64,000 bases of DNA from Penicillus capitatus (lineage: Eukaryota; Plantae; Chlorophyta), in assembly GCA_965649825.1 (NCBI GenBank), contig OZ287695.1, forward strand, positions 1,601,288 to 1,665,287. Direction: 5' to 3'. The position numbers and the translations under genes are program-made. Under the pieces are notes generated by a model. It made no database searches. It was not told where the DNA came from and saw only the letters and a list, made by a program, of their open reading frames with translations. Below, one piece after another: positions 35,021-63,097 of the stretch (the stretch's first letter is position 1; the number at the start of each line of letters is the position of its first letter).

Positions 35021-35081
35021 CGCGGATGATAAAGACGACTTTCGCGTAGATCTTGTCCATTTCAACAGATTTCTAGACAGA

Positions 35082-36044: not shown

Positions 36045-36312
36045 GAACGAAGACGGCGGTTGTGCGGCGAGTCTTTTTGCCACAAACTGTTTTGTAAACA
36101 AGTCGTGTCACAGAAACGGGACTTATTGGTCTTGACTCCGGTCTTGAGACGACAGATGCCCCCTTCCTCGCACCGTCGCAGAAATCAACGCAGACTTGCT
36201 CGCAGAGACCAAGAACAGTCAGAAAGAAGAAAGCGCCCCCGCCCAGAAAGAACGAATCGCATCAAATAAGGTATTCCGTGCAAAGAAGTCGAGAAAGCTG
36301 AAGCAGCGATGA

Positions 36313-39799: not shown

Positions 39800-42700
39800 T
39801 TAGGTAAAGAAAAGAGTGTCTTTCAAGCTAGGGTGCACGGCATTCTCCGTGCTATGAGATTTGTTTGTCCAGAGAAGTTTTCCACGGGCTGCTGCATGAT
39901 GTGCATAATATGCTGGCGGGCAATACGACACGCTTCGTGTGCAGCGGCAGAAAAGGTGACACATCCAGTAGGTGAGCTTCTGCAGATCGTCCGACTTGAA
40001 ACCGACCTCGTCGATAAGAACTGAGTACATCGTCGGTCTGGAAGTGCCTTGGATTCCGGTGTGGCTGACGAGATAGAAGTCGAAGCCATGTCGATGACAG
40101 ACATGGGAATCCACCACCAGACCGGGACAGACGTTACCGGATCTGTCGGCGTCGGCTGAATTGCTGGGAAAGAATCTCATGCCGTGACGCTTCGAGACAA
40201 TGATGAAGGAGATGGGTGGACAGTACTCGGCAGACGGGTCTCCCATCTCGGCACAGGCGTCTCGGATGGCCTTGTACTCGTGCTCGACGACCTTCGGGAA
40301 TTCGCCCTGGGAGACGCCGTCTCGGTAGAAGAGGATCGCCTCCGGTTTGACTCCGTTGTTCTTGACGTAGTACGCCTTCAGCAGTTCCTTGACTGTCTTC
40401 TTGAGATCTCGGATGACCTCTCGGCCGGTGTCCGTGCATTCCTGGAACTGCGTCCGACAGGCATAGTGGGACAGCGTTCGATCCATCGAGGCCACGACAC
40501 CGACCACCGATCGCTTGTCTTCGCTGCTGGGTGGTGGATGCGTCAAGTCGGCGCCCAGAACCATGAAAGGTCTGTCTCCCAGCAAAGGGAAGGAGCATGT
40601 GCGGTGCTGCTGGCCCTGCAGATTGTAGAGAGTCGTGTTGATGCCTCCGAGTTTTGCATTGATCTTCAGCGTCAGGTTAGCAACATACGCACGGCGATTG
40701 TGGTCGGCTGCTCTGCCTTCGAGTCCTGCATTGGTTGTTCGGATGCACTGGGAAGGAATGCCGACCAGCTGATCAGAAGCCACTTTGGCTTCTATGTAGA
40801 GATCCTCGGTCGTGATAATGCTTCTTCCTTCCTTTTCTGCGAAGTCCGGCATAATGACCATGATAATCTGGCAAGGTTCTCCGCTGAACTTCTTTTTAGC
40901 TCCCTGAGCTACTTCTTCAAAAAACTGTTTGCACTGATGTCGATGTTTCTTATCGAAATCCATCTTGAAAGGAAATTCTGTGACTTCCATTCCCCTCCTT
41001 TTCATCATCTCCATTAAGGCGACAAAGAGATCCTTGATGTCTGGGTTTGCACACGATGAGAAGTTCGCCAAACCCCAAGAACGAATAGCCACTGGGGTCT
41101 GGAACTTGTAAGCACTGTCGTCCCATTCCCCTTTGTTTTGGACGTCTATGTGGGCTTGGTCCCCACCCTCGAGGCTGGGTCCAGGCAAAACACGTGCAGG
41201 AATGGTCGCCATCTCTTCCGCGATCTGGACACCCCAAGCGTCCAGATGGTTCTTGTTTCTGCCGTTGCCCAGCTGGTTCTTATGGCACGCTTCGATGAAT
41301 GCCTTCTTCTCCGTTGGTTTCTGGGAGGCGGCCTGGATCAGTCGCTCCAACTCCTTCTCGTTCATCTTTCTCTTGTATGGCACCGTCTTAATCATCAGGC
41401 ACTCCGGAGGGAATGCATGGTGCGAAGGCTTGTTCTTCTTGTAGATGGTCATCAGCCTGAGATTGGGGTAGCGAACTTGGTAACGGTTTTCGTCCAACAT
41501 GTACTGCGCGACAGTGACCCAGCCTCTTCTCGTCTCGATCTTCATCGTGGCCGCTGTCAGCTTTGAAAACTGTGCCAGCTTTTCGTGGATTTCCCGTCTG
41601 GGGTTATGTATCGTCTTGCACTGCAAACATACACCACGTGTCAAGTGACCGTTCGAGCAGACGAATGTGGCGAACCTTGAGTTTGTCGAGCTTCTCGGCT
41701 ATCCTTGCGTAGTGTCGCTCGTCGCGGTCGAGGTAGTGGTGGAGGTGTTCGGGCGGCACCTTCTTCCCGGCCACCTTCTCTTCGACGTAGGCCTGGATGA
41801 ACTGGACCACCGTCTGCTCCTGGATCATGGGCGTGAAGCAGGAGTTCATGTTCAGACAGAGTCCGAGCTGACAGGGCCTGGCGGACTGGTAGTATCCCGC
41901 CCACGCTTCTACGCCAGGACTGATGGTGCGAGCTCGATTGTCGCGTCGGAAGATCGCATTTCCCAGCGAGACCAATCCCTGCTGCATGTAGAAGAACTGA
42001 TGCAGTGCCACATCCAGCGCAGCCAGAGGGGCTGCTGGATACTCGACGTCGCCGTGGGACATGAAGCGAGACACGCTGGAGAGCGGCCACGAGGCCGTGA
42101 AGGACACGATGACCTGATACTCCTTCTGCTTGTCGTCCAACTTGATTGACGCCCTGCTCTGGAAGTTGTCGACCTTGCGCTGCGGCACGTAGAGGTTCTT
42201 CTGTCCATCGAAGGCGGCGCCTGGAGGCAGGATGTTTCCATTCCTCGTCAGCTCGGCCCACACGCGTTCTGCGATGTCCCTCTTGACGGTTACTGGACCA
42301 GCGGGGCGTGCTGGGGCCGCTCGACCACGACCTCTTCCTCTTCCTCTTCCACGACCACGTCCACCGCCTCCTGTTGCATCCACGTTGCTTGAGCTGCAGA
42401 AATGGCCACTGTGGGATCTCTCACTTGGTGGCGCGGCGACGGGTTGAATGTCCACGTCGTACTGATGAATGACGATCTCGCGGAACTGTATCGGAAAAAC
42501 GTTGGCGTAGACCTGAATACGCCGACCGAGTTTGCCTAACTCGGGTCTGACCACCATATCACCAACCTACACGTGTTAAATACATTTTCTCCGCGCGCAG
42601 CACAAAGGATGCCGTACCCGAGGTCGCGGCGACCTTTCTAGCTTCGGTGCGTGCGCTAACACCTCGTCAGAGACTGGTGATGCTCTCGAGTCAGTCGAGG

Positions 42701-42885
42701 GAGCACTCAAAGAAACAGATGCCAATAGTCCTACACAGATAAACGTTTGTGAGTTCATGATAACCAAATGATAGAGATGCAGCACCGTTCGGCGACGTGG
42801 GCGACATAGGTTGCTGCGTATCGTTTTTCGCAGCTTTCTTCTTTTGCCGTCTCTTGGCGCTCTTAGACAACTTGGAAGCATCCAT
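39800..42885 (-). CDS. AGO: Argonaute protein A (N-PAZ-MID-PIWI, DEDH tetrad)
   Basis: GRRIQVYANVF, PAZ, QC, KINAKLGGIN, GADLTHP, GREVI, YRDGVS and PAYYAHH. ORFs 41604..42557 and 39800..41644 are joined by a 55-nt intron (41621-41675). Two small upstream exons splice in frame from ATG 42885 (MDASKLSKSAKRRQKK). Confidence 0.95.
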
Positions 42886-44519
42886 TTTGATCGCGTCGAA
42901 CGAACACACGCACGGAGAACGTCAGATACGAGGAGAACAAAACAGCACAGGCGAAAACGTCTTTTTGTTACGTTCGCAAATGCGTTTGCAGTTGAGGTCT
43001 TTCGCGTTCTCTCGAAAACCAATTGTTCAAACACGCAAGAAAGCGAGAAATCACGGTATAAATATCCATGCAGTGCTGAGCACGGATGTGACAAGCACGA
43101 ATTAACACACACGAATGCAGCCAATTGGTCGTGGTCAGCACGGCAATACCCTAAAGGACGAACCTCTACAGAAGAGTTCCGCGAATAGACATCAAACGGC
43201 GAGTGGCGAAGGGAAAAGCAGCACTGAACAAGTGATGGCGAAACGGGTAGGTCGAGTTGGGTGCGGACACGTTGACGGATCGTGTCTGTCACGGGCGATG
43301 ATGCTGTCAGACGATCTCGGTGTGCGTCGTTTAAGAAAACCCAGCTCTCGTCTGTCTGAACTCTTCTGTCTCTTTAGTCTTTAGAGATCGATAAGGTATT
43401 GATTCTTCCGGTGTGGATCGCAGTTATGCATTAGTGGCTATTGTTGACTGCATCTTTACCGAACTGCATCCTTACCGATTGGCGTCATTTCTTCTCTCGC
43501 AAAATCTTCTTGAACATCGTCTGTTTTAGCGATCCAAATGATTTCTGGCTTACTATGCGATGCAAAGGTAATCGATTTCATGGAGTTGCCAAATACATGC
43601 ATCTGATTGAATCTCTGTGGACCACGGACAAGTGTATGCTTATCATTGTAACGTTTTTGAAAGAGACACGTTGTTCTCGACAGTTCTTCGATTCCAATTT
43701 CATCTTCAGGTGCTACAACAGTTGGAAACAGAAGAAACCAACGTGACATTAGCATTACAAGATGACATAAAGAATAAGATGCATTTGACATTCAAGGGGC
43801 TAATGTTTTTGGAAGCTTTGGGCATGGCGAGCTCGAATCCTTGCTTCCAAATGCACCTTCAACAAACATGGGCGCTAATGGATGACACAGCTGCAAGAGA
43901 CTGTACATTGAGACGCAAAGCACGGCTGAAGGAAGGCTGGATCCTCTTCCATGGGCGGCGGCGTTCGTCCAAAGATCATCTCACAAGACAAGTCTTCGAA
44001 ATTCGGATTCATGGTGACAGGCAGGCCGAAATCTTCGGTGAAGAATTTCTGTGTGGGGATCTAAAGACACACACCCTCCTGACGCTCGATTCCTTACAGC
44101 ACATCTCACACTTTACACATGTTGACACACATTCCTGTGCATCCACTGCTCTCCAGATATCTGCATTTCTTGATCTTCACAAGGCTCTTCCATTTCTCCA
44201 CATCTCCATCTGCTGTTGTGATATCTGTCTCTTCGACGTCGCAATCACCGACCAGCCACATGAAACCGATCTTCGTGATCCATGCATTTAATTCGGCCGA
44301 CCACTGGACTGGAGGAAACCAAGATCTGTGGACACGACAATGTCATGAACGAATGCTTCTGCCGGGCGAACCGAAATCGCTCTGCTGCTTCGGGAGGTGC
44401 TGTTGAGCTCAGAACATTCTGTACGACTCTCTGGGCATCTTTGGCAGATCCACGCTTCAAAACCTGCGCAGCTTATTTTACATGCGTACGATGTGTAGCA
44501 CATCCTTCACTTTTCTGCC

Positions 44520-45583
44520 GACTTCAATGAAGCTATCGTAGGTGATCTCCGAAGGAATGGGTTCTACAGAGTAAGGAGACATCGTAGGAGACAGCGACGT
44601 TCTGCATAACGACCGTTCAGTTGTTCACACATCCGAGCGGTGAACCATTTCAGAAAGAACTTCGTGACGATACCGTCGTTGTAAGAGATCTTCTCTGCGA
44701 AGGGATCCTAGTCACTCGGACATGTCACACTTCGCATACAGGAATCGATCGGGTTCCAATCACTTTAGAATTCTTCGTTTTTGACAAAGAAGAGGAAGGA
44801 GATGCGAAAACATGCCGTCCACGGTATCTTCCAGGCCCGGCAGCACGCCGATGGGAAAAAGGAACTGGCCGAAAACCAAAGCTTGTGCCGTTTACCGTAC
44901 GGGAGACCAACATCGAGCACGATGCTTTGACAAGACAGGGCTTCGAAGGTGCACGCGTCAGTGGACGACACGCAATTAATGAACAGCGTTTAACGCGAAC
45001 CACGATTCGCTAACTGGGACGTGTTCAGCATGAGATTCACATGTATAACACCACACATACACCTATGGGTTCTGGCATACAGCGCAATAGTGTATCCATT
45101 CTTTCCGTGTTCTGCCAATCACAGTGTTCATCATACAGAGAGATATCCGACGGCATTGGATCACCGTCTTCCGTTTTGGTTCGTTTTTGAACGTCGTCGC
45201 TTGAAAAGGCGTCAAACTGTTTTCGTCGGTCGGTGCAAAACAGCCAAGGCCATTCATCGGTTCCGATTCAAATGATGCAGAACAAAACGTATTTCCATCG
45301 ATGCAACAAGGAGGCACAGGTGCTGTTATTCACTTTTCTTACTCCGCTCCTCCGTTTCTCCTTTGCTTTTGCTGTTATCTGAGGTCGAGTGAACGGCAGT
45401 TTAGACGGATGCAATAGTTCTTCAGGCGTGTCTGGATCCCCAGCGAGTTCTTCTCGAGTGAAAGGAGCGAGGCACTGCGCATATGTCTCTTCATCGACGT
45501 AGAGATACCACCACTCCAGACGCGCGTCTTCGCTCAGCATCCCATCCAAAACCTTGCTCGTTGAACACGTCGCGGAAGCCATT
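44520..45583 (-). CDS. Hypothetical protein, multi-exon
   Basis: Protein-like exons (LEWWYLYVDEETY..; EWPWLFCTDRRKQF..) with plausible splice sites. No family recognised; boundaries approximate. Confidence 0.3.
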
Positions 45584-45675
45584 GCACGAGAGCGTACTGC
45601 TGCATCGGTCACGTCACTAAAACGACCGTTTAAGAATGTACGCACAAATTTGGTAGCAATGTCCTGTGGGGACCT

Positions 45676-47306
45676 TCAAGAATCGATAGCGGTTCTTAGG
45701 GCTTGAGGCTCTTCCTCATAGACAATACGATAGATGGAGTCAGCTTGGTCGTCCGAGATCAGCAGAGAACCATCTGGGAGTTCTTGGACATCCACTGGTC
45801 GCCCGAACGATTCGTCATCTTTCATCCATCCCTGAAAGGCGATTCAAGCAGATGGACATCACTAAGCCTCCGAACCGTGGCAAAGATTTCGTGATCGATG
45901 GCAGTTCTGTTGTCTTCTCCCAATTTGACGTTCACGACGCGATAGCCTTTTATGGATCACTCTTTGGAAATTGGCACAAGACAGAGGGAAAGGAACAGAC
46001 CTATTTTGTCATCTCTGTTCCAGCTACCGTGCTCAGCGATGAAAATGGAGTTTCTGTACTTGGGTGGGAACATCTTGCCAGTGTAGAATCGCATGCCCAG
46101 GGCTGCCACATGTGGACCGAGGGCTTGGACTGGAGTCCGTTGACGACGCCGTTTGGCTGAATTGGAAATCACACACAGAAATGAAGTGCTTTCAGACACA
46201 GAATGCCACGGACCTGTGCATCCGTCCCCATAGAGCTGATCCTTTATCGTCTTGAATGTACCGACATCTCGATGGTGTGGATCTCCCATTCCCTTCAGAA
46301 GAGATGGACACCTCAGACAAGCCATGCCCAACAGAACCTACTTTCACATGGCAGTAAGGGAAGCTGTAGTTTTGGCCCCTATCCACAGCCACGTGCAGTA
46401 CGTCATCTGGGAAGTCGTTGCCCATGTAGTCTGCACCGTTCTCTGTAAAGAAAAACTCTTTCGTGAATGGGTGCCAATCGAAGCCCACTGAGTTACGCAA
46501 TCCAGACACAAATAGCTTCAGATTTCGACCGTCTGGAAAGCAAAGGATTCTGTTAAGTGTGGACTCTTTGCCTAATGAACTCTCTTACCTGGATTCATCG
46601 TCATAATCGTACCGTCTATTACCTTTCCATACTCTTTAGGCTCGCAGAGGTTGCAAGCGAGACCGACAGCAATGAAGAGTTTTCCATCCGGACTGAATCC
46701 AATGTATTTCCAATAATGGTGAGGAGTGAGTGGGAAGTCGTCCCTCAACACTGTAGGCTTCCCGAATTTCTGAAAACGATTGGAAAAGTGGCATCATGTC
46801 AAACGTAGAAAACGAACGAACTTTGCCACTCAAGGCCAAACGATCCACATCGTCATAACGAAGGACGTCGGTGACAGTGGCAACGTATAGGGATCCGTTG
46901 CGATAGGCAATTCCATTGGGAACAAAAAGACGCTTCAAGACAGTATTCACACGATCGGCCACTCCATCGCTGTCGTCATCAATCACGGCAAAAATCTGAA
47001 AAGGCGGCAGTATATGTCCAAGATTAGATCACGTTTCTGTGTGCTCACTCTGTGATCTCGCCGAGTCGAGATGTATAAGATCGTTGCGTTGGATTCTGTG
47101 CAAGTGCTCAAAGCAATACTCCGTGCGTTTGGTACATTGCCACTCGCATAGTTCTCAATACGAAATCCAGTCGGCAATCGAATGTCCTTTAGACTAAATG
47201 CGTTGCGAGAAGATTTGCCACGGCGTTTCTTTTGACCGACGATACCATTGACGGAGAGCAAGAGGGCAACAATAACAAGAACCCGGTGAAAACGGCGAAG
47301 CGGCAT
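45676..47306 (-). CDS. Secreted PQQ-dependent sugar/sorbosone dehydrogenase-like beta-propeller (GSDH family)
   Basis: Signal peptide; LPTGFRIENYA; PNGIAYRNGSLYVA; GLRNSVGFDWHP; LGPHVAALGMRFYTGKMFP; AEHGSWNR; GRPVDV. Confidence 0.85.
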
Positions 47307-47349
47307 GGTTATGACGGATAAGTGAAAGGAATGAAACGACATCTGTAAC

Positions 47350-50300
47350 ATGCCGCGTGACGAGTATGTCGAAGGGCAGCTTTGCCGCTTCATCGACGCC
47401 GCAATGCACAGCGGCGGAACCCAAACGCAACCGGAAATACGCAGACGTGCAGTTCAAAAGCTTATGACGGCATGGGTCTGTCTTTCTGTGGTGTCTCATC
47501 ACCTGGGTGACGATGATGTATGTTCAGAAAGCGTCCTCTCAAAAAAGCAACGCATTGACGTTCTCTGAAACCAAGTTGCCGCCGTTTCCTGACCCGGTGT
47601 GCCGTTGTTGGTCCCGTTTTCCTGGCAACGAACGCGTTTCTAGGAAGTGTACCGTCGACTGGATCAGATACAGAGACAGCAATTGGCAGTATTGCTTTCA
47701 AAACTGCAGCAGAATTCGGCACTGATGCGTCGCGTGTCGTTTGGCCCATGCGACTCCCATCAAGAGCCGATGACAATGAAACTGCGGGATGCCGTTCTCT
47801 TCTTTCTGACGTTTCTCGCCAAAACGGATCGTCTCGGGACAGATGCACAGGCATCGCATGACGCGTCTGAAGCGGATGATCCTTTGCAACGATTCGTGGA
47901 CGCCATCGCACAGCTATCAATGCCAGAACCCTCGGATGAGGAATCCGACACGGAATCCTGGTTGTTGCCATGTTTTCGACGTGACGGCCTCTCTATTCAG
48001 AACATAGCAGAGCTGTTCGATTTCAGCGGAAAGGAAAGTGAAGAACCAGAGACCTATCAGCAACCTCTACGGCTGTGGGATTTCATCAGTAAGCCTCATC
48101 AACAGTATGAATGGACAGATAGGTATGTATTCTTCAGCGGCAAAGGGAACGGCGGTTTCTCAGCAAGAGACGGAGGAAGAAAACGGATGGAATCAGAGAC
48201 AGATCGAACTGGCAGAGTTCGAGAGGACGCCAGCATCCAATCCGTTGCTCTCAGGATTTGAAAGGATGGCAAATGGACTGTGTGAGATCGGAACGGATGA
48301 GACGACAGATGCTTCCACAACACATATCGTAACCGTAGATGTGGGAAATGAGACACCAGCAGCACATACCCGCGAGGCCTTTGAGAAAGAACTTATTCCT
48401 GTGATCACTCTGGCATTGGATGGACTGCTTCCGGCGATTCGATCTTTGGAAACGGCATCCAAAACGCAGAGGGCTGCTGCCTTGCATGGGCTGTTGACAA
48501 AAGTCACAAAGTACTGAGTTCTTGTCATTGTGCGACACGAATCGTGTTTGCCTTAGAGCTGGACGTGCCCGGATGGATCTGGATGCGTTTGTGGCTCTTC
48601 CTCTCCACCAAAATGCCACTCAGACAGCCTTTCTCTCAGCTGTTTCGTCCATCCTGCGTTTTCACTCTGCCACTCTGCAGACTCTGAAAGCATCGATACT
48701 AAAACGCCAGCGACTGGACTCTGGACTCTCTTTGACTGCATCCACTGGACAGATGCATATCTCTATCATAGAGGCGGTCCTTCATACAGAAGATCTTCAG
48801 AAACAAGTCATAGCTTTGGCAGGAATGTGCAGTTTGGATGAAGAAACGGATCCTGAAATGGCCAGAGAGAATCTTCCATTAGGCACTGATCTTCTTTCAA
48901 AGCTGTATGCAGAACTGTTGGAGGCCGACAATCGAACAGGGCCAATGATAAGGTAACGTCCATCACAGCTGCTGACATCTCCTTGTCGATCTACTGACCA
49001 GGTATCTCTTTTGCTGTACCGCTCGGCCCTTCTTGACACAAGTACGAAGATGGCTCTACACCACAGACGATGTCTTTGGGCACGAACTTGCAAAAGAAGG
49101 CTCTGTGCATGTGCCGGAATTCTTGCAGCCAGTCCGAGAGCTTTTCTTCGAAGCTGGGCACCAGCTCCGCATTATTGACAAACTCAGAACAGGGCTTGGA
49201 GTTGAATCGGCTGTTGTTCAAGCGATCCGTCAGATCTCAAAGTCTGAGGAACTTGAAATGACGAACATTTGCCAGAAATGCAATGATGCTTGGGCTCTCT
49301 GTCGAACAGAATTTGGACACGTTGGCGTCTCTTCCTGGTTTGCAGATGGTGGAAACCAATCAGCATTCTTACCATTTCAACACAATGCACTCCATGAAGT
49401 ATGCTTGCTCTTCGCAAAGATCGATTCTGAGTGTCTGAATGTTGCCAAGGTCGTAGATGCGATGAACAGAGCAGCTCAGGAGCGACGAAACGAGGTTCAG
49501 CACATATTGACAACGGCCCGGGAGATTCGTCGAGTGGAGAAGAAGATCACCGATGCCAAAGCACTGCTTTCATTTCAAGAACGAGCAGTGGCCATCGAAC
49601 GACAGAGGAGAGAGTCCATCCAACGCTTTTTACAGCAGAAAACAGAAAAACAGAAACTCTTGTCGGAACAGAAGGCGGCCATGAAAGAGGCCTCGGCACG
49701 GAAGACAGTTGAACGATCTAAAGTACAGCCCGACAACTTGCAAACTGCATCTCCAGACTGTTTACCCAGGAACTGCATCTGGAGCACGAAATGTTGAGAA
49801 AGGAAGCTCTGAAGGAGCATGCTAGGGCCATGGCAGACCTCAAAGCGGAAGTCGATACTCAGCTCCCTTGTGCGAATCGTGTTCGCCAGTTCGAAAGTCT
49901 AGGTGCTTGGAAGGCGAGAAAAGAAAGGAAGTGAGGCAGAGATGGAGGTCGAAGACGAGGGCGTAGCACTCGATTCTGAAGGTGATTGTGAGATGGCTCT
50001 GGACAGAGGACCCGATGAGACTGGCCCTTCCACTTCAGCCAATCCACCGAACCGACCGCGGTGGTCGCTTCCTGCTGACTCCTCAGATGTTCCATCATCA
50101 CAGGGAGACGAAAACGAACAAATGGATGCAGCAGACGATATACCTGCAGAAGAAAACAACCATCCAGGCATTGCAGAAACAAATCTCCCAGAGCACTGGA
50201 CGCCGAGAATGGATGATGATACCGTCGAAGAGACGTCGACGAGACGTCACAGTGAAGATTGTGATGACGTGTCGCTCGTTCCAGTATCTGCTGTCGTTGA

Positions 50301-51485
50301 CGGATGCATTGTGCAAAGCATTCTTTCCCAACACAGGTATAAACACTCCATCCGTTGACGCTTTGCAATGGGGTGGGTGCTCATAGATGCGTTAGTCATG
50401 CATTTTCTGTCCTTTTTTGCGAAGAGCTCGGTTTTGAAGCAGCTGTGTCATTTCTGAGGAAGCTCTGCTTCTCCGAGTCGACGGATTGGATACGGACGCT
50501 GGTTGATAAGATCCTTTCCCATGTTGCCGACGGCTTGCCATTCAGCAGAAGGGCCCTCAGTTTTCTCTACGAAGAATCTCTGATCGATTCTTCCTATTCC
50601 GATCTCCCTTCCAATCCGCACGTGACGATGTCTCTTCAACTGACGCCCGGCGTCTTGGAGGAAGAATTTACTGCAGATATTGCCAGTCAACAGCTCGTTT
50701 CTTGCATCCGCTTGAGTGCAACAGTGGCATGGCCACTCTCGTTGATCATCACCGATGCTCGAATCGAGGAATTCAATGCTGTATTCAGAATGCTTCTGCG
50801 CATAGGCCAGACAAGATGGTGGCTGTACCGTGTCTGGCCGAGATTCAATGACACCAAACGATATACCGATCCGTCACCGAAACTCAGAGATAGACTCAGG
50901 CTAGTGCGATTGTGGTATCAGGTACGCTTGGTTCTTGCCTTCTGCTATAGATTCGATAAGGAATGTACAGGATGCCCTGAGCCTCACGACAATGCTTCAA
51001 AGCTATATGCACCATGAACTCAACACAAGCCTTTGGGAGACGTTTCTTTCGAGGATTCATCGACCTGGTCTGAGTTTTGGAAAGATTCGAGAGGCCCTCT
51101 GCGACTTCCTTACCTCTGCTCTGGAAACGTCCTTTCAGAAAATCAATACCAAACGCTTGCGCAGCGTATTCCCTATCAATTTCTGTATTTCTCGTTCGCC
51201 ATCTTGCACATGCAGATGTTGGAATCGGCATTGCAGTTGATCATCCATTTCTGCAGTGTGCTGAGCGAGATGCCTCCCCATCCAAAGCCTCAGACATCTG
51301 TGCTCGTGAACCTGATTGAAGAGGATGAGGTCTGGGAGCAATTGACAAAGCTCTCTACGGAGTTAAAGCACCGCACCTGTGCCTTCTATAAGACGCTCAA
51401 GTACAGGGCAAATCGTGGAGAGTGTACAGAAGGGCTCTACGTTATGATGAGCTTCAATACGTATTACACTTCATTGAATAATTAG
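47350..51485 (+). CDS. Gamma-tubulin complex component (Spc97/98 family; GCP6-like by size and central coiled-coil insert)
   Basis: C-terminal GCP motif IRLSATVAWPLSLIITDARIEEFNAVFRMLLRI, central coiled coil, many exons. Confidence 0.75.
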
Positions 51486-54097
51486 GTCCAGGCGCGACAC
51501 AATAAGGACATACATACCAAGAAGCAACCCTTGTGTCTTCGTTCTCAGACGCTGTATAAGAAGACAGATCACTGGACGGCGTTTTGTCAAAGGAGTTTGA
51601 GATGTGCCAAAAGAAATAGTGTAGGAATCAACAATGTAGACATTTGTTGAAGCTTATTGGTACATTGTCTCAGATCAAAAGAGACAATGTGACGGATCTC
51701 TTGTAATCAGATGATGATGATGCACAGAACCTCCGCGACTTGAAATGGCGCTGAGAACTATCTCTCGCTGACTGATCGAGAAGGAGCTTGACAAATAAAG
51801 GGAGGGGGTGAGAATCCACGATCGTTGCAGACTATACCCAATAGGTTGCATCATCATTTCCTGTGCTGTGCGTTCCATCTTACCGAGTTCTCTCGGCAGC
51901 AAGCACAAGGTCTTTGGGTGTTATCTCGATGACAGTTTTTGTTGTTCTTCTCCCTTTTACAAGCACGATGTCATTCTCTACTGAGAATTTTTGCCGACGT
52001 CTCTTGCGTTTCGGTGAATAAGCGCGTCATATCGGTTAAACCGATGCTCGACGATGCACGAGCACATGTTAGTGGCAAAGGTACTTTCTGCATCGCGTGC
52101 CGGTCGAATACGGTTGTCCTGTGTTCGAACGTCTCCTGTTCGTCGACTCAGAGTCAGGATTCGATGGAAGACGTCGTTCGAAGCACTGCTCCGCGATCAT
52201 CGACAACTTTCCTATCCGTCGTGAGGAGACGCGGGTTCGTCGAGGACCAGGCGGCCGCGACACTCTTCAAACGTAATCGTCTCCTTTCAGGCAGATTGGC
52301 ACGGGTCTCAAGAACAGCTCCGGATGTGCGTGCCGTATACAGACACTGCATGAAGTATTGGGGTTATCGGTTATGGAAAATTAGCGCGGCAGTTTCTCTG
52401 AAATGGAATGCTGATATACATCAGAGTTCGGCGGACATACTTTGTGAAGCATTGATAAGGGGACGCCAAACGTATAACGGATATGGATTTCGGAAATCTC
52501 TTTCGCGTCGACATGCTCGCAGCTCCATTCCCTGAAGCTGAACCGACTCTCCTGGCAATCGTGCACAACAAATGACATGATGCCACGCTTGTCTGTGTAC
52601 CGAATTTCAGTTCGAGAGGATCTTTAGCGTCATCCCAAAACAGAACCTGGTGTTAAGAACGATAGCGCTCTCCTCGCTTAACCAACCAAGGCGCGAACGA
52701 AGTACGAACGGAAGTAAGATGCGGCAGATGACGTCTGTTAAGTGAGTTTGCCATCACAGCGTATAGTGTTCCGTGTTTGTTCCCCATTTCATTTTGCCTC
52801 GCGATGACGCACTACTACCATTTTAAAAAGGTAAAACGACGGAGACAGAAACAAAATTGCCTCCCTATGGAGAAACGTCTCTCTCCGCGACGCAACTGTG
52901 CGTCGGCATGGCTTCTCGACTGATGTCATTTTGGACAGGGCCCTCGTCTTCCAAGTCTCCAAGAGCTGTGTACACGTGTTCTCGTCGACAACAGACATAC
53001 GCTTGGTCGTTTTGTTTCTGGTGAGGGTGTGGGAAACGGTTGGCTTTCAGGTGACGTAGGGGATATTCCTGCATACCATCTGAATCCTGTACTCGCACAT
53101 TGCAGCCCTGAAGACCTACAGAGAATTGAAGATAAGACAATGTTCCATCGACTGTCTAAATATCTGTCGGGTCTCATTCGCTGTGTCTCAGGGAAAGATC
53201 AGGCAGAGATATCCGTTGGGATACCTGGCAGATCTGGAAGCGCATGTACGTCTCGAAATACGGAAAACCCAATCCGGATGAGGTATCGATCGTCTATGAC
53301 TCGTCTTTTCGTGGTATGGTGATGTGACAGGTGCCCGAACTGAGGGCATTGCCAGACAAATCGGTGGATCTAGATAACCTGCCAGAAGGCTTGGGTACTG
53401 TATTTCTGTTCTGCACGGTCAGCTGGACGATGGGATTTGAGAGTATAGGTGATTATCGAGCTCTGTACGAACGCAAAGTGCAACAGACAGATGCTCAAAG
53501 AGCCAAACTGGCAGAGAAGCTAAGAAGAATGAAGAAGAAGGAACAGATGTCCAGAGAAAAGACAAAAGCTAAGGTGACAGTGTCCTCCAATTAGCAGCAT
53601 TGACTCATCAAAGCAATATCTGTTGCAGAGAATCGACACGATCACGCCCAGAAAGCCACGTCCGCGAAGTTCTGCAGCGCGTGCTAGCCTCAAGAACTCT
53701 ACTGGTAAATGCTCTCCATCTCATGACAGGCAAGGTTTATCTGTTGATGCCCGCAGGAGTTTCAGCCCAGGACTTCTTTCAGAAACTCGGCATGTCCAAA
53801 AAGAGCAAACCAATCTTCAAACGCAGGTAATGTGATGCCCTCACAGAGGTGGTTTAGAAATCGTTGGGTGGTTGGATTGCAGATGAGGCATATACTCTAT
53901 TGTTTGCTTTGATCTTTGCACGAACATCTATTCACGCTGTTGTAGTTTTAACCATCTGTTGTGTACGAAGATCGCCGTTATTAGGCAGAACTTGCCCATC
54001 GGTTTTGTGACGGTTTCTTGTGGAAAGTGACATGGGTGGTTTACATAAAAAATGGCTACTGCAAAATTCTCTTCGCCAAAAAGGAAAGCAATCGATC

Positions 54098-55223
54098 TCA
54101 CATCTGAAAGATAATGGAATAGGCTCGATAGAGAAGATAAAGCATGGCCACGAGCGTCAGGAACGAGAGGGCATCACTCATGAAGGACTGATCCTCCCTC
54201 TCATAGAACTGCACAAAAACAAATGGCTGACGACTAAACCATCGATAGAGATAGGATTTCATCATCTACCGTATAAGGATCTCGTGGATCAACGAAGTAA
54301 GGTGATGAATCTTCATCTCCCAAACCGAGCTTCTGTCCCAGTTGTCGAAATCCATCTTGAGCATCTAAGCGAAAACACAAGTCTCCAACACTCTGTCATC
54401 ATCACACACCTTGCTGTAGTTGCTGAAGTGACCATAGCGTTCGACTGATCGTAAAGGCAGTGCCTGCCAAGGGAGAGCATTTTCCCAAGTCCCATGAATC
54501 GCTAACAAACACTCTCCACGTAAAGGTCATCGCAGGCGGATCCGGATGGGGTCACCGGTGTTCCATGATTCGACCGGAGAGTAGATTGAGTTTGATGATC
54601 GACCGAAAGCTAACGTCGATGGACTGGTTCAGAATAGCGCCGGTCAACGACCAGTCCACCGATGCCACATCTCTCTCCATCATTCTCAACTTGCTCACCT
54701 TCTACGCATCACAGAGATCGCACACCTGTTCGTCAAAGACAGCACAGACCACTCTTGGCCGATCCACCGATTCAGCAATCCAGTTCATGCGTTCATATTT
54801 CTCCTTCCCACGGAACGATCGTAATGGATCCTGCATTGCACGGCGGTGAGAAAATGGAGAGTGTGAACAATGGGGTGATGTTGCTTTGTAGATGACATCT
54901 CCTGGAAATCGAGTCATTGTCCAACGGCCTGGTCTCTGTAGATCGACGGCAAATGTTTTGATGGTCTCCTCGACCGACGGACTCGATGTACAGACAAAAT
55001 CATTACAGTACTCGCGATCGATTTCTTCGACTTCCAACGCATCTTCGACGCTTTCTTCACTTTCGGCTCGGGGACAGAGTTGCCATCTGTGTGATTTCTT
55101 TGGCGCTGTCCAGCGTCTCGTGAGAGGAGGCAGTCGGCGTTGAAGCAGCGCAGGAGAAGGGCTCAGCAGCGACACTGGCAACGTGCGCCACTGCATTTGA
55201 TCTCCAAAGAATAATGACGCCAT
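54098..55223 (-). CDS. Conserved plastid-targeted protein with an NTF2/SnoaL-like domain and C-terminal TM helix
   Basis: Transit peptide; REYCNDFVCTSSPSVE; DPLRSFRGKEKY; VDWSLTG; IMEHR|ESWDL; ending DPRDPYT|FYEREDQSFMSDALSFLTLVAMLYLLYRAY. Confidence 0.6.
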
Positions 55224-56037
55224 TTGACTTCTTGAAGGAGGGATACGGTAACACCGTGTTGCAGAAATGCGATTCGGGGATCTTACTCTCCTTTGGAAGA
55301 AGATTTCAAAGCGACAATACATAAAGTGCATTGACGCCTCGAAGTCTTCTTCCACAAAGACCTCGTACATGAGGATACGCCTCCCGGATCGACCGTGAGA
55401 AAAAAGACGATCTCGCCCTGTGATTCTTGAAATGTCTGGCATTGCATTCACCTTTCTCTTTGGGATACGAGTGGTGTGGTCTCAGAATTTCGTTTCATGT
55501 TTCCATGGACGCATTTATTGGTAATGGAGCTGCGGACAGTGTTCGAAAACACAGCGCTAAGGTGAGTTGCCATTCCCAAGGTGTTGCGATCTTTTGCGAA
55601 TGAAGACTTCAGCCCGGAACACCTGTGTAGGCTTAAGGGGCGGAGGGAATATCTGGCAATTCGAGATCTTGTCTGCGGCAGCGAAGAACTAACCGCACAG
55701 ATCGACGGATGACGGCCACGTCGTCGTGTTTGCTAACTATTCTTTTGGTTGTCCTCGCTGTCGATTCTTATGCGCTGTCACAGATCAAGATCGACATCTT
55801 GTGCCCATTTAGGATATGAGAATGGGTGCTGATCCAAAGTCGGCGGCGTTTTGGCGCTGAAAAGACGATTCCCTGGTGCATCGAGTGTCGGTGCGCGCAC
55901 CGATTTCGCGTCGCGCCGTAACCGGTAGGCTACGAACAGTAGTGTCCGTCAAACATTTTAACTTGCCTTTGGCAGAATCACTAAAAGAGTAGTAGCTTCA
56001 CTTCACCGTTTTCCGCAGAGCCATTTCGATTGCTGTT

Positions 56038-57158
56038 ATGGGAGCTGACGCGCCCGAAGTTTATCGCGCCGTCGAGTGGCTTAGAAACGGAAAAGAAGAG
56101 CAACAGTATCAAGCCGCTCTCGCTTTGCGTTCCTTAGCAGCAGACGCTGACAATAAGGACCTAATAAGAGAAGCCGGTGGTATACAGGAACTTATAAAGC
56201 TGCTTGACTCCGGACCCGATGCTTCACTGACGATTGTCTCTGCGGAAACCGTTTGCTGCCTCGTCGCAGACGATCTCGTGAATCGCGTAAGATGGCCCTT
56301 CTCACTTAGCACTCATGTGATGACAGCCTCCAGGAACTGCTGAGACATTTTGGAGGCGTCGAGAAACTCGTTAAGCTCCTCTATTATGGACCTAATAGCG
56401 AAAGCACGCATCGAGCATTGTTGGCGTTGAGAATTCTGACAGACAAAGAGATTGACAGATTAGCCATTCTGAGAGCTGGAGGCATTCGTCCGTTAGTAAG
56501 CCTCCTCTCCTCTGGCCCCGAATCAGAAGTGAAAACCCTCTCTTCATCTTCGCGGATGCGACATTTGGAACGCTCTAGATAACCGAGTACTCGGCTGCTG
56601 CCCTTGGAAACTTGGCAGCCGGTTCTCAAGAGATCAAAGATGCAATTCGTGAAGCAGGAGGGATTAAACCGCTCGTTGACTTGTTAAAAGAAGACCCGAA
56701 TGAGATTTCAGCAGAACTGGCAGCTGTCGTGCTGCGAAACTTGTCACTGCAAAATCCGACGAATCGTGCAGAGATCCAGGTGACATTGCTGCTTCGCATT
56801 GTCCGTCATCTCATCTGAAGCCTGTCTATCAGGCAGCGGGCGGATTGGATCCATTGTTACGTCTATTGTCCTCAGGACAAGAAGCTCTGCACGATCCACT
56901 TCCGTGTGTTGTGGAATACGTGGAATGCAAAACCACTGGAACGAAAACGAAATCGCTGGAAGGCATGTGTTGCTTCGACCCCACACACGGACATCTCTGC
57001 ATTGCTCCAAGGGAGATTCCAAAGTTTGGGTGTTTTGGACCTGGTCATGAACCGGACCCAAGGTGTATCTCCGCTTTGATGAGGATTGTGTGTCATGGAT
57101 GGATGTTGTTTTTATAGAGAGCGCAATGCTGAACGTTATTCGCTCTTGCGCAAATTGA
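56038..57158 (+). CDS. Armadillo-repeat protein
   Basis: Repeated IREAGGIxxLVxLL / AAxALxNL units. The 3' end is tentative. Confidence 0.8.
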
Positions 57159-57919
57159 CCATCGTGGAAGCAGAAAGCAACTCTCTGGAGCTCAATTTTA
57201 GTGCAGCGGAGAGAAACGTAAGCCGTCTGCTGCATCACGCACAGGGGTATTCCGAGTGATGTGCCTTTTTAGGGTGTGAGGCAAATTGACAAAGGAGGAA
57301 AGATCAAAAACCGCAGACTCCAACGGCTTCTTATCTGTCCATGTTCGGCAACAGAGGTCAAAGGATCGATCATGAGAATGTTGACCAGAATGCATCTCGA
57401 AAGAGAATTTCGAAACAAGCACACGTCTACGGTACAGACCAGCTCTACATTTGCTTCCGTGTCGGACACGGAGGCCTAACGTGATGGGATCATTAAATCG
57501 AAGAACGCAGTGGATGTTCATGGATCGGTGACTGATGGGTGAATAAGACATTCATTCTTCACACTGCGCGATAACGTACCATTCATGTATACTGACTTCC
57601 TTCGGTAAATGAGAGGGTTGCCGTTCACGCTTTTGCGTTCTCATTCGATGGCGGCTCGATGTGATTCTCTATCAAATACCCCTGGGCTCAGGACAGCGAA
57701 GTATATACATGTGTTGGTCCTCTGACAAGGGGAGGGTATATACGTACTGCTGATACTCCAAACATATCTATCTACTGCTGTCACATCAGCTGTTTACTGG
57801 CGGAATCTAATATACATCCATCCGTTAAAGCGGTGATCCCGAGGCTTTTTGCCACCAACGTTCACGCGTCTGTTCAATGTTGATGCAACTAAAAAAATGT
57901 TGGAAGACCGTGTGTCTTT

Positions 57920-58410
57920 TCATCTTGGTGTCGCGGTCACATCCTTCAGAGTTGGATTCATCCGTCTCGGAGCACAGACGTCTTCAGTGGGAGGCAGCGT
58001 TGGATAATCGAGGATCAACTCATGCAACTCGTCTGAGGTCAGCGTATCCACAATCATCTCCATTTGACGATAAATCATCAACAGCTCCGAGGGAACAAAG
58101 CCTGAATAACATAACACCGATGACGGATAGACACAAATCTCTGTGCCTTGTGATGCACATCATATATACCGTTTTCTACCGTTATCCGACGGGTAGCAAT
58201 CTGAACACGTGACTGCCAGTATGGTGTCCATAAGAGACGGGGGTTACTCATGGCGACATCGAGCAGTTTTTGCAGATCCTGTATCGCCACTGCTCAGTGT
58301 GTGCATGGTTTGAGAGAATGCGTTACCAGGTCAGTGGTAATGAAATCGATGCGACCCTTCTCGCCTGTCGTCCGTCGAATGCCTCGCTGCAATGCCCTTC
58401 TGTAGGACAT
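57920..58410 (-). CDS. RING-less paralog of the RING-H2 gene at 10471-11320
   Basis: Three exons align with the RING gene at the same intron positions (ITTDL|..DLQKLLDVAMSNPRLL..|..YRQMEMIVDTL). Stops before any RING. Confidence 0.65.
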
Positions 58411-59080
58411 AACTATACACACAACACATACATCTGACGGCGCCGCCGGAGATTTCTACGGTTTCGTGAAAACCGGAAGAAATTTTCTGCTCTGCGCGAC
58501 GCTATTGAAACGGCGATGCGTAACAATCATCCTACAGCGAAATCGGATCACTACCGGCTCCGGCTGTGAGACAGGCGCCAACGAGAAGTCGCGCCAACAT
58601 CGTCAGAAATGCTCCGCTTCTCCGACGCGATTAATGACGACAAAAGGCGCATTGCCTCACTTCGTACAACAGTATCCCACACGTGGTGCTTTGCAAAATC
58701 GTCAGCCATTAGCGGTGCTACGATCCACTGTCTCAACGAAACGTGTCCCTAGGGAAAGAAAAATGTGCTTCACACGACTGGAGGATTCGATCCGCGCTGA
58801 CCAGGTGCGATATCCTGCGATGGAATGCAAACGAATGCGTGACGTCTACCGTGTCAGGTAGGTCCACATTACTAAATCTTCAAGCGTTCCACATTGGAAG
58901 TCACACTAATTCTCACGACAGACAGTAAAAGAGTGTTTTCAGTATGCAATCCATAACCGTTCCACCTCGTCGACTGCTCAACATGGGTGCGATTGTCTTC
59001 TGCTCAATGCCCTTCCTTTCTACGCATCAGGCCATCGCAGGACTCGACATTTACAGGTATGTCTTCACATCGACGAGGCA

Positions 59081-59803
59081 TCAGTTCTTTCCCAAAGCGT
59101 TAATGAGTTCATTGTAAGCTGATTCTAAATCGAACAGGAGTTGGCGTTTGTCTTCTTCAGGCAGTTCATAGTTCGCCGCTTTGAGATGGAGTTTGGAAAC
59201 CCATGACTGCACGACACTCTTTGCTGTGCAATCCGCCGGAAGTGTCGTCAGTTTGTTGAGACTGACAAGCAGCTCTTTTAGTGAAGGCGAGATCTCATCG
59301 ACCGCGACCATTCCCAGACGAATAGAGTCCATTGTGGTGATAAAACTTGAGACGGCAGAAGCGACAGCCACATGTTGCGCAGACGTCTCGGTATCTGTCG
59401 TGCCGTGCTCGATTGTTGCCGGAACGCCAGCCTTTAATCGCGTGGATGCCAAGGGACAGTGCATAGAGTACTGTGCAATGAACCCATCGATGTCTGGCAC
59501 CTACATACAGTACATAACATTGAACTGGCTGAGAGGCATAGAGAGGCACACCGCATCACGCATGGAGTTCCATAGTGTCTTGAATTGGGCCAGAAGCTTC
59601 TTGCAGGCAGGTTCATAACTCTCAGCCGGTATGATATCGCGAACGTAAGCACGCTCGAGTCGCTCCACCGATTTCACCATCACGAAGATATCTGAACGCG
59701 TCAAGGCGTATCTGTAAAGTCACTGCGCTTGTTGAACATTGCCTGCGAGACTGTCGTGGTGACTTTGTTCCTTCGCATCGTTGGCGAGTCGGATACGAGC
59801 CAT
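59081..59803 (-). CDS. VPS28: ESCRT-I subunit VPS28
   Basis: LA|DIFVMVKSVERLERAYVRD, CPLASTRLKAGVPATIEH, FITTMDSIRL and RQLLFDLESAYN. Confidence 0.93.
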
Positions 59804-60024
59804 TGTGATGTAAGTGTTGTTGGTACGTGCGTGTCATCTCCGTGTTGAGCACGGCCTCATGTTCAAATAGCGTGTTACGCCAAGCAATTTTCAGTTCTTT
59901 CAATTGCTTCAGAGCAGTGAGCTTTCTGTATCCAAGCGAGATTGGACGAAACCAAACGCATAACGCTTAAGTGTGTTGCATATCGTCGTCTTTTAGTCAA
60001 CGACGAGTTGATTAGTTGACCGCG

Positions 60025-63000
60025 ATGGATCCTAAGAAATCGTCAAAAAGCGCGAAGAAGCGACATAAGAGGGCCGCCAAGCGGGCGGAGGCAAGGGACG
60101 CGTCGACGACGTCGACGAGTACTTACTTGCATCGATCACTCATCTAGGGATTGAATTTTTGACCTAGATCCCTCCTCCCTTGTCACATCGTCGGATGCTC
60201 CGTCGACGGAGTCTCTGTCGATGGCGTCGCTCGAGGCCACACTATCTCCGACCCCGCGAAGAGCTCAACGCCAGCGTGTATGAAATGCATGCATTTCACT
60301 GTAAGGATAGATAGACGAAGGATGTATTTAGGTCTGCGACATGGCGCCCAGATTAGACTATGGCAAACTCGGTCGGTGTATTCAGGTCTACGCCAACGTC
60401 TTTCCGATGAAGCCCCTCAAGATCGTCGTTCATCAGTACGACGTGGACATTCAACCCGTCGCTGCGCCACCAAGTGAGAGATTCCACAGTGGCCATTACT
60501 GCGGCTCAAGCAACGTGGATGCAACAGGAGGCGGTGGACGTGGTCGTGGAAGAGGAAGAGGAAGAGGTCGTGGTCGAGCGGCCCCAGCACGCCCCGCTGG
60601 TCCAGTAACCGTCAAGAGGGACATCGCAGAACGCGTGTGGGCCGAGCTGACGAGGAATGGAAACATCTTGCCTCCAGGCGCCGCCTTCGATGGACAGAAG
60701 AACCTCTACGTGCCGCAGCGCAAGGTCGACAACTTCCAGAGCATGGCGTCAATCAAGTTGGACGACAAGCAGAAGGAGTATCAGATCACCGTGTCCTTCA
60801 CGGCCTCGTGGCCGCTCTCCAGCGTGTCCCGCTTCATATCCGACGGCGACGTCGAGTATCCAGCAGCCGCTCTGGCTGCGCTGGATGTGGCACTGCATCA
60901 GTTCTTCTACATGCAGCAGGGATTGGTCTCGCTGGGAAATGCGATCTTCCGACGCGACAATCGAGCTCGCACCATCAGTCCTGGCGTAGAAGCGTGGGCG
61001 GGATACTACCAGTCCGCCAGGCCGTGTCAGCTTGGACTCTGTCTGAACATGAACTCCTGCTTCACGCCGATGATCCAACAGCAGACGGTGGTTGAGTTTA
61101 TCCAGGCCTACGTCGAACAGAAGGTGGCCGGGAGGAAGGTGCCTCCCGAACAGCTCCACCAGCATCTTAACGACCAACACTACGCAAGAATAGCCGAGAA
61201 GCTCGACAAACTCAAGGTTCGCCACATTCGTCTGCTCGAACGGTTGGGTTTGACACGTGATGGATGCTTGCAGTTTAAAACGATACATAACCCCAGACGA
61301 GAAATCCACGAAAAGCTGGCACAGTTTTCGGACAAGACGGCGGCCACGATGACGATTGAGACGAAAAGAGGGAAGAGGGTCACTGTCGCGCAGTACATGT
61401 TGGACGAAAACCGTTACCAAGTTCGCTACCCCAATCTCAGGCTGATGACCATCTACAAGAAGAACAAGCCTTCGCACCATGCCTTCCCTCCGGAGTGTCT
61501 GATGATTAAGACAGTGCCGTACAAGAGAAAGATGAATGAGAAGGAGTTGGAGCGACTGATCCAGGCCGCCTCCCAGAAACCAGCGGAGAAGAAGGCGTTC
61601 ATCGAAGTGTGCCACAAGAACCAGCTGGGAAACGGTAGAAACAGGAACCATCTGGACGCTTGGGGTGTCCAGATCGCGGAAGAGATGGCGACCATTCCTG
61701 CACGTGTTTTGCCTGGACCCAGTCTCGAGGGTGGAGACCAAGCCCACATAGACGTCCAAAACAAAGGAGAATGGGACGACAGTGCTTACAAGTTCCAGAC
61801 CCCGATGGCTGTTCGTTCTTGGGGTTTGGCGAATTTTTCTGAATGCCCAAAAGACGCAGTGGAAAAACTGACGACTGACCTAGTAGAGATGATGCACAAT
61901 AGGGGTATGGAAGTCGCAGACTTCCCTTTTGACATGGACTTCGACCGCAAAGACCGATTTAGAGCCGAAGAATTCCTTCGCGAAGTAGCTCAGGGAGCTA
62001 AAAACAAGTTCGGCGGAGAACCTTGCCAGATTATCATGGTCATTATGCCGGACTTCGCTGAAAGGGAAGGAAGAAGCATTGTCACGACCGAGGATCTCTA
62101 CACAGAAGTCAAAGTGGCTTCTGATCAGCTGGTCGGCATTCCTTCCCAGTGCATCCGAACAACCAATGCAGGACTCGAAGGCAGAGCTGCCGACCACAAT
62201 CGCCGTGCGTATGTTGCTAACCTGACGCTGAAGATCAATGCAAAACTCGGAGGCATCAACACGACTCTCTACAATCTGCAGGGCCAACAGCACCGCACAT
62301 GCTCCTTCCCTTTGCTGGGAGACAGACCTTTCATGGTTCTGGGCGCCGACTTGACGCATCCACCACCCAGCAGCGAAGACAAGCGATCGGTGGTCGGTGT
62401 CGTGGCCTCGATGGATCGAACGCTGTCCCACTATGCCTGTCGGACGCAGTTCCAGGAATGCACGGACACCGGCCGAGAGGTCATCCGAGATCTCAAGAAG
62501 ACAGTCAAGGAACTGCTGAAGGCGTACTACGTCAAGAACAACGGAGTCAAACCCGAGGCGATCCTCTTCTACCGAGACGGCGTCTCCCAGGGCGAATTCC
62601 CGAAGGTCGTCGAGCACGAGTACGAGGCCATCCGAGCCGCCTGTGCCGAGATGGGAGACCCGTCTGCCGAGTACTGTCCACCCATCTCCTTCATCATTGT
62701 CTCCAAGCGTCACGGCATGAGATTCTTTCCCAGCAATTCAGCCGACGCCGACAGATCCGGTAACGTCTGTCCCGGTCTGGTGGTGGATTCCCATGTCTGT
62801 CATCCACATGGCTTCGACTTCTATCTCGTCAGCCACACCGGAATCCAAGGCACTTCCAGACCGACGATGTACTCAGTTCTTATCGACCAGGTCGGTTTCA
62901 AGCCAGACGATCTACAGTTGCTCACATACTGGATGTGCCATCTTTTCTGCCGCTGCACACGAAGCGTGTCGTACTGCCCGCCAGCATACTATGCGCATCA

Positions 63001-63097
63001 TGCAGCAGCCCGTGGAAAACTTCTCTGGACAAACAAATCTCGTAACACGGAGAATGCCGTACACCCTAACTTGGAAGACACTCTCTTCTTTGCGTAA
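60025..63097 (+). CDS. AGO: Argonaute protein B (N-PAZ-MID-PIWI, DEDH tetrad)
   Basis: 918-aa ORF 60341..63097 with the same motifs as Argonaute A. Two upstream exons splice in frame from ATG 60025 (MDPKKSSKSAKKRHKR). Likely in-frame introns at 60474-60527 and 61217-61273. Confidence 0.96.

Follow-up and report, generated by a model that had tools for sequence, protein, structure and literature searches.

A stretch of 64,000 nucleotides (nt) from the green alga Penicillus capitatus (contig OZ287695.1, positions 1,601,288 to 1,665,287; hereafter the window) contains two Argonaute genes that point away from each other, AGO-A on the minus strand (39800-42885) and AGO-B on the plus strand (60025-63097). 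An earlier note on this DNA had described them as an inverted pair about 17 kb apart with common intron positions, and had explained their near-identical and diverged tracts as an old duplication repeatedly homogenised by ectopic gene conversion. We analysed the pair together with its closest relatives. The closest proteins were open reading frame (ORF) fragments of ENA metagenome assemblies, whose contigs we fetched for comparison. Three contigs, all from ERZ25074695, belong to the window's species: ctg340427 (43x, 687 kb), with copies A1 and B1; ctg336807 (27x), a second haplotype of the A locus (A2) with 98.6% identity to the window; and ctg340203 (5x; below, ctg340203_5x), with a B-like copy, B3. 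Two contigs from ERZ26696514 represent two haplotypes of a second species: ctg303591 (155x), with the orthologous pair C and D, and ctg303811 (162x), with the pair C1 and D1.

Both genes of the window are intact and consist of five exons and four short introns, all of which are GT-AG. AGO-A (exons 42885-42786, 42730-42618, 42566-42425, 42370-41676 and 41620-39800, minus strand) encodes 956 amino acids, without an internal stop in the spliced coding sequence, and AGO-B (exons 60025-60118, 60168-60277, 60332-60473, 60528-61216 and 61274-63097, plus strand) has a stop-free translation of 952 amino acids. The introns measure 55, 51, 54 and 55 nt in AGO-A, and 49, 54, 54 and 57 nt at the homologous positions in AGO-B, which bears out the common intron positions. 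Introns 1 and 2 set off two short 5′ exons (MDPKKSSKSAKK... in B, MDASKLSKSAKR... in A), which correspond to the N-terminal extension of the Caulerpa protein P0004. Intron 3 is a GTGAGA...CAACAG segment of 54 nt in A and B and 52 nt in C, and is missing from the Caulerpa homologues. Intron 4, beside the residues KLK, is a GT...TTGCAG segment of 57 nt in B, 55 nt in A (41621-41675, minus strand) and 53 nt in C; the Caulerpa homologues run KLKVKTIHNP uninterrupted over its site. The residues that introns 3 and 4 would encode are absent from these homologues. As intron 3 in both genes (60474-60527 and 42371-42424) and intron 4 in B only (61217-61273) are stop-free and have lengths that are multiples of three, AGO-B looks like one unbroken, intronless ORF of 918 amino acids. 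AGO-A is listed as overlapping ORFs of 317 and 614 amino acids. We considered and rejected the idea that AGO-A is a frameshifted pseudogene: the 2-nt indel in question sits in a GT-AG intron of copy-variable length (55, 57 or 53 nt), and the spliced proteins are intact in 9/9 copies. ORF-based gene calls in the public collection break up all copies of the AGO-A and AGO-B type, and the pair thus offers a general lesson, since such calls on metagenomic eukaryotic contigs gave a pseudogene-like A and an intronless-looking B.

The spliced proteins have the eukaryotic AGO-clade domain set in the order ArgoN-L1-PAZ-L2-MID-Piwi. Three Pfam matches are above cut-off (ArgoN 49 bits, ArgoL1 41.5, Piwi 273) and three are slightly under it, though in the correct order (ArgoL2 32.5-33.1, PAZ 20.8-26.2, ArgoMid about 22 bits); the PAZ score of AGO-B rises from 19.8 to 26.2 bits once intron 4 is removed. 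AGO-B matches the structures of Arabidopsis AGO10 (7sva; E = 1e-104) and human AGO2 over the full length, with E = 1e-103 to 1e-104, and the best named AGO relatives are two proteins of Caulerpa lentillifera, with 45-50% identity. The columns of the predicted DEDH slicer motif (GADLTH, G-R-E-V-I-R-D-L, YRDGVS and YYAH) are invariant in 9/9 aligned copies, in line with the earlier statement that both genes keep these residues; the E of the tetrad we take to be the one that its spacing to the YRDG motif indicates, relative to human AGO2. The Y/K motif of the putative 5′-phosphate pocket (DLY.E.K) lies in homogenised sequence, directly past a divergent stretch of the MID domain that is described below.

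Homogenised and diverged parts of the pair

A repeat search recovers the two genes as inverted arms, 39800-42569 (minus strand) and 60329-63097 (plus strand), with five gap-free blocks of 87-96% complementarity and a distance of 17.8 kb between the arms. The homology between A and B thus begins where exon 3 begins and extends over 2.77 kb to the stop codon, with 93% identity. In B, the arm begins in the final bases of intron 2, takes in introns 3 and 4 and ends at the stop codon, and the arm in A shows zero differences from a second assembly (ctg340427). Upstream of 60329 and downstream of 63097, identity is at random level, so the 3′ flanks are indeed unrelated. The parts of the genes that lie outside the arms, i.e., exons 1 and 2 with introns 1 and 2, are not homogenised: in B (60025-60331, plus strand) their homology to A is recognisable at the peptide level, with about 48% nucleotide identity, and in A (42567-42885, minus strand) they share 78% identity with orthologue C and 48% with B. 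Introns 1 and 2 of A and B are not alignable, while intron 3 matches in 51/54 columns and intron 4 in 49/57.

Within the arms, identity is far from even. In 50-column windows of the full alignment, it is 92-100% over B positions 60362-61160, 61406-61805 and 62006-63055, 72-90% over 61162-61405, a stretch with 6-nt, 2-nt and 3-nt indels, and 54-72% over 61856-62005. These values match the near-identical tracts that had been described, and the 5′ exons, the entry to the PAZ domain and 61840-62000 are indeed diverged. The C-terminus, which had also been called clearly diverged, is only modestly so, with about 6 differences per 100 nt and one paralogue-diagnostic site, at 63074. The differences between A and B are strongly clustered (variance-to-mean ratio 11.7 per 100 columns, vs 1.2-1.3 in the comparisons A-C and B-D), and we thus did not see the uniform divergence along the genes that would speak against conversion. 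The longest difference-free tract has 266 columns, where 77 are expected, a length that was reached in 0/5000 permutations, and this tract is still significant when the divergent MID stretch is left out. Significance for tracts and mosaic was taken from our own permutation tests.

Synonymous divergence (dS) between A and B, in sliding windows, is about 0.00-0.05 over codons 30-180 and 540-780, rises to about 0.2-0.3 over codons 180-420, and reaches 1.15 at the peak of the divergent MID stretch. The three levels indicate conversion tracts of different ages. It could instead be supposed that one recent large replacement, or a partial re-duplication, occurred in each species and that conversion was not repeated. 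Most of the gene body is uniformly low in paralogue dS (about 0.02-0.05 over codons 30-180 and 540-780), as this idea would have it; however, the three dS classes along the gene speak against a single replacement, and a single event cannot spare an internal stretch of 180 nt with the same borders in both species. Together with the allelic data given below, this makes such an origin very unlikely.

The segment of intermediate divergence covers L1 and the entry to PAZ, at 61118-61376 in B (plus strand) and 41521-41780 in A (minus strand), with the 6-nt and 3-nt indels in exons and the 2-nt indel in intron 4. In this segment it is A that stands apart: it has private changes (HHYLDRDER.., SKLTAATMKIETRRG-W), which are fixed in both A haplotypes, and two in-frame indels, while the B protein is nearly the same as C and D. 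The nonsynonymous divergence (dN) is 0.135 for A-C vs 0.040 for B-C, and dS between A and B is 0.30. Positive selection in this A-specific segment, which we considered, is not supported (dN/dS 0.35). AGO-B, for its part, has private changes in the opening codons of exon 3. At 60413-60419, the B copy of the window has four private substitutions in 7 nt (KPLK vs FRE in the eight other copies), and neither the window nor the fetched loci yielded a donor of this cluster. In the second species, C and D are nearly identical both at the L1/PAZ entry and at the start of exon 3. Each of the copies in the window's species is also beginning to diverge on its own.

Comparison across two species and among alleles

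The head-to-head pair recurs with its flanking genes in ctg340427, ctg303591 and ctg303811, and, for A only, in ctg336807. In these syntenic contigs, the A-type copy has GCP and D27-like genes upstream, and the B-type copy is flanked by VPS28 upstream and by a zinc-finger gene and GOGAT downstream. The flanks of the two species are about 82% identical. The spacer between the start codons (42886-60024, 17.1 kb), whose ORFs include GCP-like and VPS28-like ones, is collinear between the two species, with no inversion seen. We found no third close paralogue that could act as donor in the protein collection, where the two clusters at 90% contain only A-type and B-type copies.

From exon 3 to the stop codon, the two genes of a species are more similar to each other (A-B 93.2%, C-D 94.9%) than either is to its orthologue (A-C 84.3%, B-D 83.7%). 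The divergent MID stretch (B 61835-62010) and the 5′ region show the reverse, with orthologues closer than paralogues: identities are 63.6% (A-B), 67.6% (C-D), 79.5% (A-C) and 75.0% (B-D) in the former, and 48%, 58%, 78% and 56%, respectively, in the 5′ exons with introns 1 and 2, where the B-D value, taken from a ten-sequence alignment, is probably too low, since pairwise BLAST of the B-side loci spans this region at 82% overall. Informative quartet sites in the gene body support the grouping (A,B|C,D) in 303 cases, (A,C|B,D) in 31 and the third split in 6, and 26/31 of the (A,C|B,D) sites lie within 61854-62033. In agreement with this, neighbour-joining trees group the sequences by species in the body minus the MID stretch, and by paralogue in that stretch, the 5′ exons and the 3′ flank, each with 100% bootstrap. 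The parts that escaped conversion, along with the syntenic flanks, thus place the duplication before speciation, as the earlier note had supposed. The rest of the gene, including introns 3 and 4 and synonymous sites, groups by species, as expected if it was homogenised by ectopic conversion.

Could strong purifying selection or codon bias have kept the two copies alike without any exchange of DNA? The PIWI and MID domains are highly constrained, and dN/dS outside the divergent MID stretch is 0.07-0.09. However, dS outside that stretch is 0.108 for A-B and 0.089 for C-D, vs 0.68-0.80 between species; for the same codons, orthologue dS is 0.7-0.8 vs 0.1 for paralogues. Inside the stretch, dS is 1.19 for A-B vs 0.87-0.93 for orthologues. 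Since silent sites and introns 3 and 4 are homogenised like the rest, and derived polymorphisms are shared (see below), protein constraint cannot explain the likeness of A and B, and exchange of DNA is required. The dS and intron data refute selection without exchange, to which we give practically no weight.

Alleles carry the same signal at a finer scale. The window and ctg340427 are identical across A and over 51500-59960, but differ at about 92 positions inside B, and at 8 within the window's final 430 bases. Sites at which only B or only B1 matches A fall into 25 runs, vs 45.5 expected (permutation p = 1e-5); among them are a 2-nt intron indel, at which B1 equals A, and a 3-nt codon indel, at which B equals A. 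We polarised allelic differences with the other species, using two alleles per locus from the assemblies. The paralogue, too, has the derived allele for 23/68 polarised differences at B, 6/20 at A, 26/57 at D and 17/23 at C, i.e., for 30% to 74%, where independent mutation would lead us to expect a few percent at most. Such shared derived polymorphisms are a signature of ongoing interlocus conversion, and the second species, with its high coverage, shows the signal too. At the B-type locus, allelic dS (0.081 and 0.094) is about double the A-type values (0.044 and 0.043). The shared derived polymorphisms and the allele-specific tracts represent events younger than the current alleles, which a single replacement per species does not provide, and which, with the three dS classes, uphold the earlier claim that homogenisation was repeated.

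In the A-side overlap of the window with ctg340427 (38557-51393), all 12 differences lie in an 800-nt stretch, 45784-46570, which could reflect a switch of haplotype or a variable element; ctg336807 stops inside it, at 46223.

Near-identical copies in assemblies raise the question of artefact, and the near-identical tracts could in principle come from collapse, chimeric graph paths or cross-copy consensus polishing. Contigs do break near repeats (ctg340427 ends at window position 38557 and ctg336807 at 46223), and ctg340203_5x fuses bacterial DNA with 60% guanine plus cytosine (GC) to the B-like copy, 5 nt into exon 3, with an AGO copy that is A-like at 60358-60869 and then B1-like. On the other hand, both copies lie on one contig in the window and likewise in three further haplotype contigs, of which two, with about 155-162x coverage, repeat the pattern; two assemblies give the same A sequence to the base; collapse would leave a single copy in place of two that differ by 7% and keep a conserved divergent stretch; and the signal of species versus paralogue is the same in both species. 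We therefore regard an artefact as highly improbable. The central result does not depend on ctg340203_5x, since four other haplotype contigs and the window agree.

The MID island and its interpretation

The divergent MID stretch, hereafter the island, occupies 61834-62012 in B (plus strand; ..AVEKLTTDLVEMM..DRFRAEEFLREVA..) and 40885-41063 in A (minus strand; ..DIKDLFVALMEMM..HRHQCKQFFEEVA..). The A type is identical in the haplotypes A and A2, and is 79.5% identical to orthologue C. The island borders, 61834-62012 in the window's species, are 61841-62014 in the second. We defined a site as paralogue-diagnostic if the four A-type copies all agree on one state and the four B-type copies all agree on a different one. 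There are 29 such sites, 27 of which are within 61852-61980; the remaining two, at 60428 (I/V) and 63074 (K/E, seven residues before the C-terminus), lie within homogenised sequence. In a protein model of exon 5 (mean predicted local distance difference test score (pLDDT) 72.8, and 81-92 over the island part), the island is predicted to form alpha1, beta2 and alpha2 of the MID fold, between beta1 (WGLANF) and beta3 (QIIMVIM) and ahead of DLY.E.K, with its helices predicted at exon-5 residues 193-209 and 225-245.

Each island type is conserved, as judged by dN/dS between orthologues (0.17 for the A type, 0.26 for the B type). This suggests that selection for two MID variants maintains the island, with a mismatch barrier in addition, which is the explanation we favour. 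A serious rival accepts the conversion, but holds that the island persists neutrally, as a fast-evolving stretch that has passed a mismatch threshold and blocks tracts, with no functional split between A and B. In its favour, the two Caulerpa paralogues are least conserved in the homologous stretch (40% vs 63% elsewhere), the island's dN/dS of 0.17-0.26 exceeds the 0.07-0.09 of the rest of the gene, so that its constraint is weaker, and the island is AT-richer than the homogenised body (GC 40.6% in A and 46.4% in B vs 54.9%). However, purifying selection still acts on both island types across species, the 27 sites are fixed differently in the four A-type and the four B-type copies between the same borders in two species, and the isolated diagnostic sites 60428 and 63074 survive in otherwise homogenised sequence. 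We consider neutral persistence possible, though the less likely explanation. We also asked whether the island types are orthologous to the two Caulerpa paralogues, which would imply a far older duplication, and found no signal, with 28-36% identity in every combination.

Taken as a whole, the pair is very probably a case of classical concerted evolution by ectopic conversion, with a conversion-resistant island, that followed a duplication before the species split. The mosaic, the conflicting tree signals, the homogenised introns and synonymous sites and the paralogue-shared derived polymorphisms are seen directly at these loci. The marks of concerted evolution are present: a duplication that predates speciation, judged by flank synteny and by unconverted parts that group by paralogue; paralogues within species that are closer than orthologues, silent sites and introns included; significant tract and mosaic structure, in the 266-column tract and in the runs test on B and B1; and polymorphism common to both loci in both species. 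The duplication that gave AGO-A and AGO-B would be older than the split of the window's species and the second species. After the split, short non-crossover conversion tracts between the inverted copies would repeatedly have overwritten the sequence from exon 3 to the stop codon, introns included, and it is this repeated conversion since the split that would make paralogues within a species (about 93-95%) closer than orthologues (about 83-84%). Since homology ends before the 5′ exons and the 3′ flank, conversion would stop short of these parts. It appears not to have crossed the 180-nt island (MID alpha1-beta2-alpha2) in either species, where a high density of mismatches may hinder heteroduplex formation and so reinforce selection for two MID variants.

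Several points weigh against this interpretation or narrow it. The polymorphisms give no sign of GC-biased conversion, as there is no weak-to-strong bias among them (weak-to-strong to strong-to-weak changes are 17:38 at shared derived sites and 28:51 at private derived sites). The allele-level mosaics (B vs B1 and B3) could partly be consensus or graph artefacts, and ctg340203_5x is an evident bacterium-alga chimera at this locus. As for the island, relaxed constraint together with a mismatch barrier could explain it, given that the Caulerpa stretch is the least conserved, and selection on it is deduced solely from dN/dS below 1 and from conserved borders.

If selection does keep the island, the A and B proteins may differ in some property that depends on MID, for example in the choice of partners or the sorting of small RNAs. 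Two MID-defined small-RNA pathways, which the earlier note had suggested, are plausible, with indirect support from the conservation of each island type across species. The 60-residue MID part is the only region that these otherwise homogenised Argonautes have kept distinct across speciation, which makes it a candidate specificity determinant. A bolder joint claim is that the island is the sole determinant of two Argonaute functions, and that conversion from A diversifies the B locus. The second half of this idea derives from B-type allelic dS (0.08-0.09) being about twice A-type allelic dS (0.04) in both species. We regard the joint claim as doubtful, but if it were true, the island as sole determinant would amount to a natural domain-swap experiment, and conversion from A at the B locus would resemble the conversion-driven variation of immune genes.

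Known systems and other features of the window

The process itself is already well known as classical concerted evolution, and models of it and of interlocus conversion have been reviewed (PMC3924837). Concerted evolution by interlocus conversion, with islands of divergence that selection maintains, has been described for the GOT1 paralogues of Tigriopus (PMC3728101), and escape from gene conversion for CEACAM1 (PMC7042247). Like these cases, AGO-A and AGO-B have paralogues that are closer than orthologues, a mosaic of tracts, shared polymorphism and a sharply bounded resistant island; unlike them, the genes here are Argonautes, and the island is a structural unit of MID with the same borders in two species.

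Palindromes on the mammalian Y chromosome undergo arm-to-arm gene conversion. The same process is described for sex-chromosome palindromes of willow (PMC7023750). The Argonaute pair is similar in that inverted repeats on the same chromosome, around a spacer, are kept alike by non-crossover conversion, and in that no inversion of the spacer is seen. It differs from palindromes in that its arms are the gene body alone (2.77 kb), with 93% rather than more than 99.9% identity, in that its spacer consists of 17 kb of ordinary genes, and in that homology stops at an intron and a stop codon.

Among duplicated Argonautes, GENECONV detected no conversion between ago-1a and ago-1b of aphids (PMC3536612), conversion was neither ruled out nor demonstrated for the AGO2 and Piwi duplicates of dipterans (PMC4824172), and the paper on tandem AGO clusters of Phytophthora does not mention it (PMC6284064). 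The pair studied here shares with these duplicates a local duplication followed by divergence that is taken as a sign of pathway specialisation, but conversion dominates the history of AGO-A and AGO-B. In the literature on gene conversion in Argonautes we found no positive case, and conversion-driven concerted evolution has apparently not been described before in this family. It also misleads gene trees: the gene body alone would date the pair as recent, with a separate duplication in each species.

The window contains a second inverted duplication, of about 4.1 kb and 97-99% identity, between 14653-18801 and 30850-31445 plus 35044-38581. Its right arm is split by 3.6 kb (31446-35043) with a PIH1_CS ORF, and its edge coincides with the end of ctg340427 (window 38557); it was not found beside the A orthologue in the second species. 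The contig ctg336807 is collinear with the window only down to 31529, and beyond this point contains a Ty3-like pol ORF (RVT_1, RNase H and integrase; L006:14725-16427) that is absent there in the window. The chimeric contig ctg340203_5x (L005:1-14491), which is listed for two samples, has its junction at L005:8990, corresponding to window position 60337, exactly at the start of A/B homology. Its bacterial part, with 60% GC, carries AraC, HxlR, Crp, ADH and isochorismatase genes.

The left part of the window has ordinary eukaryotic genes, among them those for a mitochondrial calcium uniporter (MCU; 635-1585), whose best named relative is from Monoraphidium (41%), and a SOUL haem-binding protein (6865-7557). 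The matches of MCU and of the Argonautes indicate a chlorophyte, though only in a coarse way. Positions 28290-30317 hold an acetyl-CoA synthetase ORF of 675 amino acids, apparently without introns. The GOGAT fragment, which is uninformative for taxonomy, has bacterial and plant matches, all at 60-67%.

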